The notes: a model not told the origin generated them from the sequence alone. A stretch of DNA of 63,882 nucleotides from Pavona decussata (GCA_977016875.1 CDRNST010000104.1:2356001-2419882); one strand, 5' to 3'. Positions 23,033 to 36,529 are shown, counted from the stretch's first letter. Translations and numbers: made by a program.

Positions 23033-24951
23033 ATGGTACAGTTTTATACCCTTCAGATTTTGTTTGTTGTTGCTGCGTTAAGCTGTCTTCGAAACACACT
23101 TGTTTTTGGAGAAGGGGATTTGGAGTTTTCATCGAAAAACGCTGATGTTCAACAGCATCGATCTAAACGATGGCTTTGGGGCGGTAAGGTCACTTCTCTG
23201 TTTTGTTGCTGTTGTGCATGATTATCCATATCCTTTTAGTTTTTTTTTAATTTTTTCTTATTCAACGGTAATAAATGAAAACGGTGAATACAAACCCCTG
23301 CATTCTCAGGTTGAAACCAAAATTGGAGAATTTTTGAGTATGTGGTTGAAAATCCCATAGCGTGGCAATATAAGCTATTGAACGGTTCTTTGTTGTGGTG
23401 AAGATTAATGTTGCTCTATAGGGTGGCTCTAAGTTTTGAGTCTCACCGTATAAATGAACGCTACAGTACTGAGCAGTACTTTCCTGTGGTCGGTGCTGTT
23501 TTATGTACCATACAAAGTGGCACTTACTTTTGAGTCAATGGTTGCAATTCACAGGCGTGACCACTTAATGTTCCCGACCTTGGGGACTCTTATAAGAATG
23601 ACAACATGTATTGGGTGGATTATCCACCAAATAAAATCAAATGCAGTAGTAGAGAGTGCCTCCATTTTAATGGCTCTAAGCTGACTTTCTCAAGTGGTAA
23701 AGGGATGTAACTGTATTGCTCCGCCATTGAATCGTTCGCCGGTTAAGGTTCGGTATGCTTGCGCCTTGACAATCCACAGGCTTCCGTGTTTCGTCTTCAC
23801 CTTATTATCCGGTTTCTGTGTTCCACATTTATCGAGTACTTCAGTTAAACGCCGCTTTTACGATAATACAAAAGCACTCTGTGTCTGTTTAACAACTATC
23901 TCGAACTATTTGTTAGCTGAGTGATAATGGAAGAACCAACTGGGAACTGCAAGGAAACAAGTAAAGCGTGTTCGAGGAATTTTGCGTAATTCTGTCCAGA
24001 TTTTTATCAAGAAATTTATTCTTGCCAGATCTTAGAAGCTGATGTTGGATGTCGCCGTCCCAAAACTGCCTAGCCGGGAAATACGACATTTTTTATCCTC
24101 AAAAGAATGTGCACACTGGCACAACTCGTGCTTCTTCCTATGCTGCGAATGTTGAAGGTATTCGCTTCCTTCCCTCAATTTTGCGTAAAAAGATTGTAAG
24201 GCAATTTTTTCAAAATGTTCTCGTTAAAAAAGCTGACCTTTAACTACCGTTTCTGACATTGAATCCCACTTAAATGGATCCAATTTTCAACGGCCTAATC
24301 ACAATTTTCGAGTGGTCAACGCCAAATCAGTGTAACTAATTTGTTCAATTTAAACAGAATAGAACTCTGAGTATTCGAAGTAGTTAATTACCAAAATATA
24401 TCGTCGAGTTTAGTCGTGCAATCGGATTTGACATATTCTATAAGCTTCGCAAATAGGATTTTCAAGGTAAAATTAATGTGGTGTATACTATGACCCATAA
24501 ATTCCCTCTAACCTCCACAGGAAGGACTCAAAGTCGTGTTCACAATAATCAGTCAAAACACCTTGAATTGCGAACAGGCTTATCACCATAGCTGGTATTT
24601 ATTTTCAGTGTTGTTCAGAACTTTTTCACGAGTTCATGTTTGTGAGAATTGTGTGCATTTTACTTATCGATTATGTTGTTCAGGTAAAAATCGACGAACC
24701 GAGTAAGAACAAGATAAATCAGTGTTGCATAACATTTTAAACCCAGCATTACCTGTTTCTTGGCTTTAAAGTTCTTGTGCGTAAGTTCCACAGGGTGAAA
24801 CATTAATCTGCTTTTTTTGTTTTGAGAAATTAATTGTTCGTTAATTGGGTCGTTTAGATACTTTCCGTCCACAACTAATGCTTTATATATAAGCTTTCGT
24901 CACCCCTCAGTCAACCGAGAAATGGTCATCGATCGCTTTATAACTTTAGTC

Positions 24952-24989
<38 letters not shown>

Positions 24990-33900: not shown

Positions 33901-36529
33901 AACGTTTCATTGCCTCGTTTTTCGATGGAGTCATCGTAAGGACCATCCTGCGACGTAAAAGGAACGCAAGAGCTCAATTACAATATTTCGGGTTGGGGCG
34001 ATCTGTGGCAGGCAGATGAGATCTTAACAGAACAACTGACGTTAACGAATGCTGACTATTATTTTTTTTTTATTTGCAGGATGCTTGAGCAATTGCGAAA
34101 AATGCATTAATGGGTATGACTGCATCAAGTGTATTCCAGAAACTGCAAAATTTGCACAGGACATGCGCACTTCGTGTGTGAGAACTTGTCCTTTTGGTTA
34201 CACGAGTCAAGGAGACGCGAGCACGGGAAAATCCTGTCTGCTAAACAGGTCAGCCAGCTGGAGGGTTTAATTTTAGACTCATCTTAAGCCAGCAGCTTAC
34301 ATATAATTTAATTTTTCACTGTTTTTGTTGTTGTTGTTTGTTTGTTTTGTTTTTGGGGGGGGGGGGGGGAAGGGGGGCTTCTTAACGTTTATTGTTAATT
34401 TTGTAACGTTATAATCATGTCATATCCAGTATTTGCGAGTGGAATAGTTGTTTCAGTTTTCTTAAAAGTAACTAAGAACTGTTGGTAGATCGTACTGACC
34501 AGAAGACGATTTAATGGTCGCTATTTCGCGGACATGATATAATGGCTGATATCACATGGCCGCCAAGCCAATCCAAACAACAAAACTGCATTATCAAAAA
34601 ACCTTTAAAAATATGCTGATAGTAACTTGAAAAATGATCTTTCCCAAGACTAAAGTTTTTTAATGGAAAATTAAAACCAGAAACAAACAAACAAACAAAC
34701 AGCAAAGTGGTTGCGAATTGCTGGGAAAGATACTTCAGATAAGATCAATTCCAAATCCGTATTGCTAGGTCAGCGTGTCCGTTAGACAGGAAAAGAGAGG
34801 AGATCAAACTTATTTCGATAACCGTAAATTTCATTGCCCCACAATGGATTTGTCATAACATGTATTCCATTTAAAAATTTATTTTTCTTTCACGAGGATC
34901 TAAACAAACAAACGAACGAACAAACAGTCAAGCAAACAATAACTTGGGTTGCGTTCTAGATTCCATTCACACTTGTAGTGTGGATGGGAAGTTAAAGGTG
35001 TCTTTAAGGTGCCTGAAATATACGCACTAAACGCAGAGCCAGTACCCAAGCAATTTTGTTTCCAGGCACGCAAACTTAACCCCAGTAGTTGAACAAGTCG
35101 AAATATTTAAAGTAACAGTTCGGGCGGTGACGTTAGAGTCCTACAATCTTCGCCAACTGATTTCTGTTGGGAAGGTTAGAAAACAAGCCCGGTATAACAA
35201 TTTTATTATTTACGTTTGTTTACGCCTTTGTTTGTCGTTTTCCCCACTCCCTGTTCAATGTTGAATTCCCCACGAAGAATAATTCGTAAAGATTCACAGT
35301 AGAAACTCAACATTGATACAGGGGAGGGAAGGAACGTGAAGGCAAGACAAACTTAGCAATCTTCCTTCTTCCTTACACGTTAAGGTTACCCTATACCTTC
35401 AGAGGTGTTTCGCGTTTAAGCGTTATAGCGCGTCCAGTTTAAACTGTAGATATCTAAACCCCTATATCAAATTAAAGCTTATAGAACTGGCTATCAAACT
35501 ATACCAAGAAGTTTGAAATAAAATGAATTGTCGAATTTTCACGACCTCTAAATGCGAGCTTCAGAATCACCTTTTTTAAAGCTACAAGTCAAAGCGAATT
35601 TTGTTTTTCGCTAATTTAATTTGCTCCTCAGTTTTCGGACCCAAAGCGCTAAAAAAACGTGTCTGCGTTTTGCCATATTCAATCGCAATGAAAAGCCAGT
35701 ATAGTGCATTTTCGAAATAGGATGAAAAAATTGTGGAGTGATCGTACAAAAATCGCTCTCCGAGAAAAAAATATTTCGAAAGAAAAAATTCACAGACATT
35801 TGCTTATATGTTAAACTAGCTACTGTCCAAATTTGAAGGCAAACGGAAAAATTCCTTTTGAGTTTTAGCTCTTTGAAGTGGGTCCTCCAAGTGAAAAAAA
35901 TTGATTCGAGAAAACAGCGCTAAAAATTCGGACGCTCGCAATTAGAGGTCGTAAAAAATTCGGCAATTCATTAAATTTCAAAATTGTTGGTTTAGTTTGG
36001 TAGCCAGCTCTATAAGCTTTAATTTGATATAAGGGTTCAGGTATCTATAGTTTAAACCGGACGCGCTACATTGCTTGGAGGCAAGACACCTCTGAAGGTA
36101 TAGGGTAACCTTAATTGGAAGGGGACGCACAGCGCTATCAAATCCTGGCATGGTTTTTCTGACTTGTACCTTCATTGTTCCCTGAGGTTGGTCGGGTGAG
36201 ATCAAACATGGACTGATGCGGCAGCTAGAGGCGCTTTGTATATGCTGACGTCCGCTCTCACCTCCTCTGGGGTGAGTTGCATTAAATTTAACGTCGGGCG
36301 TAACTGCTAACGCCAGACCTTCAACCCAGTTACATTCAGTATTTTAACGTCTGACGATAGCGTTTACGCCCGCCGTTAAGTTTTATGCAACTCGTCTCTG
36401 GTTCCTCCATAATTCAGCTACTAGCTCTAGCTGCAAAGTGAGGTAAAGTGGCGCCAGATTTCTCTCTCGCAGTTCTCTGTCTGCCCGCGTAACGAATCAT
36501 TTTTGGTTTTTCTTTTCAGAATTACGTGA
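23033..36529 (+). CDS. Secreted Cys-rich protein with six furin-like (Fu) repeats, R-spondin Fu-like, about 400 aa; exons 23033-23183, 27565-27762, 29934-30122, 30826-31008, 31956-32126, 32467-32598, 34080-34248, 36520-36529
   Basis: Exon 1 encodes a hydrophobic signal peptide and an RSKR convertase site. Six following exons each encode C-x3/5-CxxC-x5/7-CxxC-xn-CxxxCP-xn-C (usually CPxG[YF]); the fifth repeat has 6 Cys. Introns are GT-AG, phase 1 except the last (phase 2). Last exon ag|A ATT ACG TGA is followed by AATAAA at 36581. Total 1203 nt in frame. The last exon is the least certain; read-through to a stop at 34270 is the alternative. Confidence 0.85.
35384..36110. mobile_element. TTAA-flanked MITE with ~170-bp TIRs (Kolobok-like) in the last intron of the Fu-repeat gene
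   Basis: ttaa-ggttaccctataccttcagaggtgt ... acacctctgaaggtatagggtaacc-ttaa; inverted similarity continues through tatatcaaattaaagcttataga. Confidence 0.85.

Follow-up and report, generated by a model that had tools for sequence, protein, structure and literature searches.

Structure and expression of the six-Fu gene

The sequence studied here, called the window below, is a 63,882-nucleotide stretch of the genome of the stony coral Pavona decussata (GCA_977016875.1 CDRNST010000104.1:2356001-2419882). On its plus strand, it carries a gene for a protein of six furin-like (Fu) repeats, referred to as the six-Fu gene, which consists of eight exons with a coding sequence of 1203 nt for a precursor of 400 amino acids. 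The reading frame opens with an ATG at 23033, just downstream of an in-frame TAA (23027-23029), and closes with a TGA at 36527-36529; both ends coincide with those proposed in an earlier annotation made from the sequence alone (the original prediction). All exons are bounded by GT..AG ends and each Fu repeat is encoded by one exon. The introns after exons 1 to 6 are in phase 1, exons 2 to 6 being flanked by phase-1 introns on both sides and exon 7 ending in phase 2 (Table 1).

Table 1. Exons of the six-Fu gene, the probable cassette exon and the two flanking genes, in window coordinates
Feature	Position	Strand	Description
Exon 1	23033..23183	+	Start codon, predicted signal peptide, short propeptide, RSKR followed by WLWG; donor G/GTAAGG, phase 1
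Exon 2	27565..27762	+	Fu repeat 1, 8 Cys, spacing 5,2,5,2,18,3,15; NIT sequon; long hairpin FIPIEYERSRKTIIR; PF15913 E 8e-4
Exon 3	29934..30122	+	Fu repeat 2, 8 Cys; 189 nt
Exon 4	30826..31008	+	Fu repeat 3, 8 Cys; NKS and NSS sequons; RNA contigs in three runs
Exon 5	31956..32126	+	Fu repeat 4, 8 Cys; NST sequon; most conserved stretch of the protein RCPDKINCRRCKP (P0001 numbering)
Exon 6	32467..32598	+	Fu repeat 5, short type, 6 Cys; donor A/GTAAGT
Exon 7	34080..34248	+	Fu repeat 6, 8 Cys; donor AG/GTCAGC, phase 2
Exon 8, coding part	36520..36529	+	Last base of Arg codon, Ile, Thr, TGA; 3' untranslated region runs past 36696
Probable alternative cassette exon	28818..28883	+	66 nt, phase 1-1, in intron 2; GC donor (GC-AG intron); encodes linker GSLTKPVPDSQIVERRSKQNKD
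Alpha-tubulin gene	8024-13676	+	Upstream of the six-Fu gene
Single-exon rhodopsin-type G-protein-coupled receptor (GPCR)	40758-41840	-	Downstream of the six-Fu gene

Spliced RNA contigs, which cover exons only, were found in three runs (X1, X2 and X3) belonging to two studies of coral metatranscriptomes. They prove the joints 31008>31956, 32126>32467, 32598>34080 and 34248>36520, all GT..AG, corresponding to every junction from exons 4-5 to exons 7-8. Moreover, a contig of 1402 nt from X3 includes the stop codon, followed by 170 nt or more of 3' untranslated region, and extends about 386 nt beyond the mapped stretch. The RNA contigs were mapped on 6 kb, with exons 1 to 3 lying outside that stretch; the joins of exons 1-2, 2-3 and 3-4 were deduced from the splice consensus and the reading phase, and from collinearity with orthologous proteins that are themselves predictions from contigs of transcript size. 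Since the RNA joints run through the stop codon, no TSP1, peptidase or receptor exon follows downstream, and the six-Fu gene does not belong to a longer convertase or receptor gene, a possibility that the original prediction had raised against its own reading.

The three contigs all start 190 nt upstream of exon 4, which corresponds to the 189 nt of exon 3 plus one base, and the contigs thus break at the junction between exons 2 and 3. Alternative use of the probable cassette exon in intron 2 would explain why they all break at this point. The linker that it encodes is 22 amino acids long and Cys-free, contains a dibasic motif and is placed between repeats 1 and 2; it is homologous to inserts of 22 amino acids in longer isoforms from Porites lutea, Montipora and the cluster of P0001, a coral protein described below. 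Such an alternative linker, with its dibasic site, could set repeat 1 apart from repeats 2-6, and we speculate that repeat 1 might be released by cleavage at the dibasic motif.

A very high contig depth, with many broken contigs, was observed in all four runs at 35300-36500 of the window, inside intron 7. This segment has the appearance of a transcribed, dispersed repeat element that does not belong to the gene.

Features of the predicted precursor

In the analyses described below, the exons of the window were searched singly, and full-length analyses were carried out on orthologous database proteins and not on the window's own spliced protein. The N-terminus of the precursor is hydrophobic at residues 4-19, the AlphaFold2 model has a helix at residues 2-19, and a signal peptide is predicted from residue 1 to about residue 26. 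A short acidic or polar stretch separates it from a convertase-type RSKR site (residues 43-46, nt 23159-23170), giving a predicted propeptide of about 20 amino acids and a predicted mature protein of 355 amino acids. The R-x-K/R-R motif is kept in all eight orthologs, with R42, R45, L47 and W48 invariant, and (W/F)LW follows the site.

The signal peptide, the RSKR site and the six Fu repeats with 46 Cys (8, 8, 8, 8, 6 and 8 per repeat) were all anticipated by the original prediction, whose quoted sequence of repeat 1 is identical to that of exon 2. The hairpin of repeat 1 is among the most conserved stretches of the protein. The protein has an isoelectric point (pI) of about 9.3, with basic residues spread along its whole length, and five N-glycosylation sequons are common to five of the eight orthologs. 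The C-terminus (...SCLLNRIT) is followed by the stop codon three codons past repeat 6. Neither the exons nor the eight orthologs contain a TSP1 domain, a catalytic domain (S8 peptidase or P domain) or any other Pfam domain besides that of the repeats, and no transmembrane stretch, hydrophobic segment after the signal peptide or flanking L domain was found. The reported lack of a protease, TSP1 or transmembrane domain was thus borne out by both Pfam and hydrophobicity.

Subtype of the Fu repeats

The only Pfam family matched at E <= 0.01 was PF15913 (Furin-like_2, the R-spondin Fu-CRD model), which was found in eight of the eight orthologs with a best E-value of 3.9e-13. The protein P0001, the only member with a reported score, reached 37.3 bits with this model, against a gathering cut-off of 28; single exons of the window scored 12.8-20 bits each, under the cut-off when taken alone. 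PF14843 and PF00757 were not matched at E <= 0.01 in any of the eight orthologs.

Profile searches of the PDB, with either the full alignment or repeats 1-2, retrieved only chains of R-spondins 1 and 2 (9 and 12 sequences; E 7e-4 to 0.04), and ErbB and the insulin receptor were never matched in these searches of the six-Fu family. Only profiles gave matches: a phmmer search of the PDB with P0001 alone returned nothing, even at E 10.

Comparison of structures gave the same order of families. When Foldseek was run with the AlphaFold2 model, the top 22 entries were all R-spondin Fu1-Fu2 pairs (E 1.5e-5 to 6e-4), followed by HER3 (5e-3) and by the insulin and IGF1 receptors (about 1e-2). With VIA-align, the top 21 entries were all R-spondins (Z 8.6-6.1), most of which superposed at 2.4-2.8 Å over 91-98 of about 104 residues. 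The best superposition was that of RSPO2 Fu1-Fu2 on repeats 5-6 of the model (Z 8.6, 2.5 Å, 97 residues); the next family, HER2, had a Z of at most 5.3 and a root-mean-square deviation of about 14 Å. The furin-like regions of EGFR/ErbB, the insulin receptor and IGF1R resemble the six-Fu protein in the general Fu disulfide-ladder fold, but match its model weakly, and they differ in being embedded between L domains in transmembrane receptors.

As a control, we used a coral open reading frame (ORF) with classical Fu repeats and a transmembrane segment (L001:961-2013). This ORF scored 60.9 bits with PF14843, 34 bits with PF00757 and 28 bits with PF15913; among Fu-containing PDB chains, it matched only LET-23, ErbB4, EGFR and ErbB3, and no R-spondin. 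The spacing of a Cys loop also differed, being x5 in the six-Fu protein, as in the R-spondins (RSPO), whereas the control has x7 and a GP motif. These tools thus tell the two types of repeat apart and place the six-Fu gene on the R-spondin side; its repeats are of the R-spondin (PF15913) subtype and not of the PCSK/receptor subtype. A grouping with PCSK5 or receptor-type repeats, which the original prediction had named as evidence that would count against it, was not what we found: the matches were to PF15913 and to R-spondin chains in the PDB, and it was the control ORF that went to ErbB and LET-23.

Most orthologs have been named automatically by NCBI as 'proprotein convertase subtilisin/kexin type 5-like', and one UniProt entry as 'R-spondin Fu-CRD domain-containing protein'; models of the six-Fu gene are thus already present in databases under automatic names. 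The former name, together with the tandem extracellular repeats of eight Cys that also make up the cysteine-rich domain of PCSK5/6, could suggest that the six-Fu protein is a detached relative of that domain, acting for example as a decoy or as a regulator of convertase localisation. We consider this very improbable, because the ORF is complete at 400 amino acids with no S8 peptidase or P domain, and because its repeats have shorter Cys loops than the x7, GP-containing type and match neither of the two Pfam families that the receptor-type control scores with. The automatic 'PCSK5-like' annotation carried by many coral genomes is misleading in this respect and is corrected here.

Family members and taxonomic range

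When repeat 1 was used as the query of an exhaustive HMMER search of 1.84 billion proteins, 12 matches were obtained. Ten were coral-type homologs of repeat 1, including the 400-amino-acid P0001; the other two were P0011, a more divergent relative, and P0012, a repetitive protein with no relation to the family. Exon 2 was 56-98% identical in the coral ORFs obtained from this search. No R-spondin or PCSK was matched at E <= 1e-3, a result that, with a query of 65 amino acids, says little about distant kin. Word searches added seven further cluster representatives of 397-419 amino acids, and those run with P0001 and the eight-sequence profile found nothing else of 220-700 amino acids at E <= 10.

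Members of the family are 397-422 amino acids long and have the same layout. The orthologs, encoded on contigs of 1.5-2.9 kb, are collinear with the exons of the window, with 45-88% identity per exon and the same start Met; in all of them, 46 Cys follow the RxKR site and the pI is 9.2-9.5. Named members belong to seven genera (Acropora, Montipora, Porites, Pocillopora, Stylophora, Orbicella and Oculina) and span both the 'complex' and the 'robust' stony corals. Neither the exhaustive HMMER search nor the word searches found the family outside Scleractinia, and the suggestion that it might be a cnidarian family in the wider sense was accordingly not upheld.

The gene is present in a single copy in the 602-Mb genome of P. 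decussata. The order of tubulin, Fu gene and 7tm_1 GPCR is common to the window and to Porites lutea, and in Pocillopora verrucosa tubulin and the Fu gene are followed by a second Fu-only paralog. These data also bear on the idea that the six-Fu protein is a venom or defence component, many cnidarian toxins being likewise secreted, rich in Cys and made with a propeptide that is cut at a dibasic site. Although the signal peptide, the abundance of Cys and the RSKR at the end of the propeptide are all in line with it, such a role is extremely improbable: the predicted mature protein is 355 amino acids long, and a single-copy gene with conserved synteny and 63-75% identity across both coral clades is unlike fast-evolving, multi-copy toxin genes.

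Two other Fu-only genes were observed in corals. The first, in the genome of P. decussata itself, is located on the same contig about 343 kb upstream (C104:2011178-2019336, minus strand), and has at least seven Fu exons, of which four are almost identical copies in tandem. Its C-terminal exon is basic, and nothing resembling a TSP1 exon was seen in it. The second is the P. verrucosa paralog (L020:20525-25502), 4 kb downstream of the ortholog, which has six Fu exons and a more acidic product of 372 amino acids; in the window, the sequence downstream of the six-Fu gene showed no counterpart of it. These paralogs are like the six-Fu gene in having one exon per repeat, a secreted-type product and PF15913-type repeats, and the P. 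verrucosa paralog also has a short repeat of six Cys. They differ from it in repeat number and charge, their similarity to it is weak (28 bits to the family profile for the P. decussata gene), and, as far as seen, they are not conserved one-to-one across corals.

The restriction of the family to Scleractinia in these searches, the recent exon duplications in the second Fu-only gene and the tandem acidic paralog in Pocillopora would all be in line with a stony-coral-specific protein of the extracellular matrix or of calcification, in which the Fu array would be a structural or scaffold part and not a signalling ligand. The predicted secretion, richness in disulfides and glycosylation are also compatible with this role. 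Many skeletal matrix proteins are acidic, whereas the six-Fu protein is strongly basic, and a literature search by accession gave nothing in favour of such a function; overall, we regard it as quite unlikely. No paper naming the six-Fu gene by any of six RefSeq, GenBank and locus identifiers was found, and none of the papers on R-spondin that mention coral or Nematostella describes it.

Comparison with R-spondins and their receptors

In R-spondins, as in the six-Fu gene, each Fu repeat is encoded by one exon. Repeat 1 could be aligned with RSPO2 Fu1 without gaps from the GC..C motif to SCPxGY, with the common spacing C-x2-C-x5-C-x2-C-x18-C-x3-C. The long hairpin between Cys5 and Cys6 has 18 residues in both, in agreement with the likeness to R-spondin Fu1 put forward in the original prediction. 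At the level of the whole protein, the six-Fu product is comparable to R-spondins 1-4 (PDB 4C8V, 4CDK, 4KNG, 4UFR and 8Y69) in being basic, presumably secreted and built from PF15913-type Fu repeats, but sequence identity is 22-29%. It differs in having six repeats instead of two, in lacking both the TSP1/TSR domain and the basic C-terminal tail, in having an N-terminal propeptide with an RxKR site, and in belonging to a family found only in stony corals. Of the R-spondin-like reading of the original prediction, the part that concerns the repeat subtype is thus supported by PF15913, the PDB profiles, Foldseek and VIA-align, whereas orthology of the family to the R-spondins is not supported, both the TSP1 domain and the basic tail being absent.

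A survey of 430 animal species published in 2025 reported no R-spondin in Cnidaria (PMC12111769). In agreement with this, we saw no canonical Fu-Fu-TSP1 gene in the P. decussata genome: among the best 150 of its 876 candidate TSP1_spondin exons, none adjoins a PF15913 match or the six-Fu gene, which is a weak test. On the receptor side, a type-B LGR has been described in Nematostella, with an R-spondin suggested as its ligand ('might be an R-spondin', PMC9545775). A gene resembling ZNRF3/RNF43 was identified in the P. decussata genome (C129:1110677-1115608, minus strand), with an ectodomain that matched PF18212 at 46.3 bits. This ectodomain is split over at least three small exons, and an exon with a RING-like motif (CVICLEKF...) and a Ser-rich C-terminal exon lie downstream. 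The metagenome contigs that contain the coral ZNRF3-like ectodomain are genomic copies only, with no cDNA among them.

Taken together with the R-spondin type of the repeats in sequence, profile and fold, and with the exact Fu1 Cys framework and conserved hairpin of repeat 1, these observations would allow the six-Fu protein to be a functional R-spondin analog. In that case, a type-B LGR and the ectodomain of the coral ZNRF3/RNF43-like protein would be engaged by one or more of its Fu pairs; with the E3 ligase thereby removed from the membrane, Wnt signalling would be potentiated, possibly in a multivalent manner. The contact residues do not favour this view. In RSPO2, we take R65 and Q70 of Fu1 to be the residues that contact ZNRF3/RNF43, and F105 and F109 of Fu2 to be those that contact LGR4-6. 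In a weak HMMER alignment, repeat 1 has E and K at the columns of R65 and Q70, an 'ER' lying one position off; the coral receptor may also differ. The columns of F105 and F109, also weakly aligned, held K/H and S in repeat 2; repeat 5 lacks the first loop, and only a Tyr stands there against the second Phe. Because the alignments are weak, this mismatch counts against a role in Wnt signalling but is not decisive.

Moreover, no unique assignment of Fu1 and Fu2 emerged: sequence profiles paired repeats 1-2 or repeats 4-5 with the R-spondin module (repeats 4-5 being the best-aligned pair by profile, with RSPO2 Fu1-Fu2), whereas structure paired repeats 5-6. A further point is the range: the searches found the family in no group but stony corals, while ZNRF3 and LGR have been described more widely in cnidarians. 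On balance, activity as an R-spondin analog appears doubtful. The same applies to the more specific proposal that Cnidaria have their missing R-spondin counterpart in the six-Fu protein, which would be a multivalent ligand of a ZNRF3/RNF43-like protein and a type-B LGR and would raise the level of Wnt receptors; we hold this to be rather improbable.

Interpretation and significance

Of the two possibilities considered in the original prediction, a separate Fu-only family fits best; its repeats are of the R-spondin type, and it is conserved in stony corals and so far restricted to them. We conclude that the locus holds an expressed, single-copy stony-coral gene for a precursor of six R-spondin-subtype Fu repeats that is predicted to be secreted, and that its product is probably a multivalent binder of extracellular partners. 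A furin-type convertase would cut the precursor after RSKR, and the six Fu modules of the mature product, which would be basic and glycosylated, would form a rod-like array. Outside the cell, this array may bind cell-surface or matrix ectodomains in a multivalent manner through its Fu beta-hairpins, like Fu1 and Fu2 of the R-spondins.

Several points weigh against this conclusion. The AlphaFold2 model, built from an alignment of eight sequences, is of modest quality, with a mean predicted local distance difference test (pLDDT) score of 62; a model of repeats 1-2 alone had a pLDDT of 49.6 and was not used. The E-values of the PDB profile searches are marginal. Other coral Fu proteins reach 28-34 bits with PF15913 as well, and a match to this family is thus not specific by itself. 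The cysteine-rich domain of PCSK5/6 was not matched in the PDB searches, and the comparison with PCSK therefore depends on the coral control ORF, which is only putatively linked to a convertase. Furthermore, the RNA proof in this species covers the joints of exons 4 to 8, and neither the joins of exons 1 to 4 nor the cassette exon. Finally, we infer convertase cleavage, glycosylation, secretion and any binding.

With regard to the six-Fu family, these results indicate that the R-spondin subtype of the Fu domain exists outside bilaterians, in a six-repeat architecture without TSP1 that is conserved across the two main clades of stony corals. This suggests that R-spondins may have arisen by the joining of a pre-existing Fu pair to a TSP1 repeat. 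The six-Fu protein is also a clonable candidate ligand for cnidarian ZNRF3/RNF43 and LGR. If it were the cnidarian counterpart of the R-spondins, Fu-mediated potentiation of Wnt signalling would predate, or would have arisen independently of, the Fu-Fu-TSP1 R-spondins of bilaterians; if it were unrelated to Wnt, it would still be a conserved, coral-restricted secreted protein.

Other features of the window

Further along the plus strand, about 15 kb downstream of the six-Fu gene, we observed exons of a Wnt gene at 51753-52127, 56804-57148 and 58003-58503. At 61564-63760, also on the plus strand, a long open frame has the reverse-transcriptase-like motifs of a non-LTR (long terminal repeat) retrotransposon and is interrupted by a run of N at 61585-61818.

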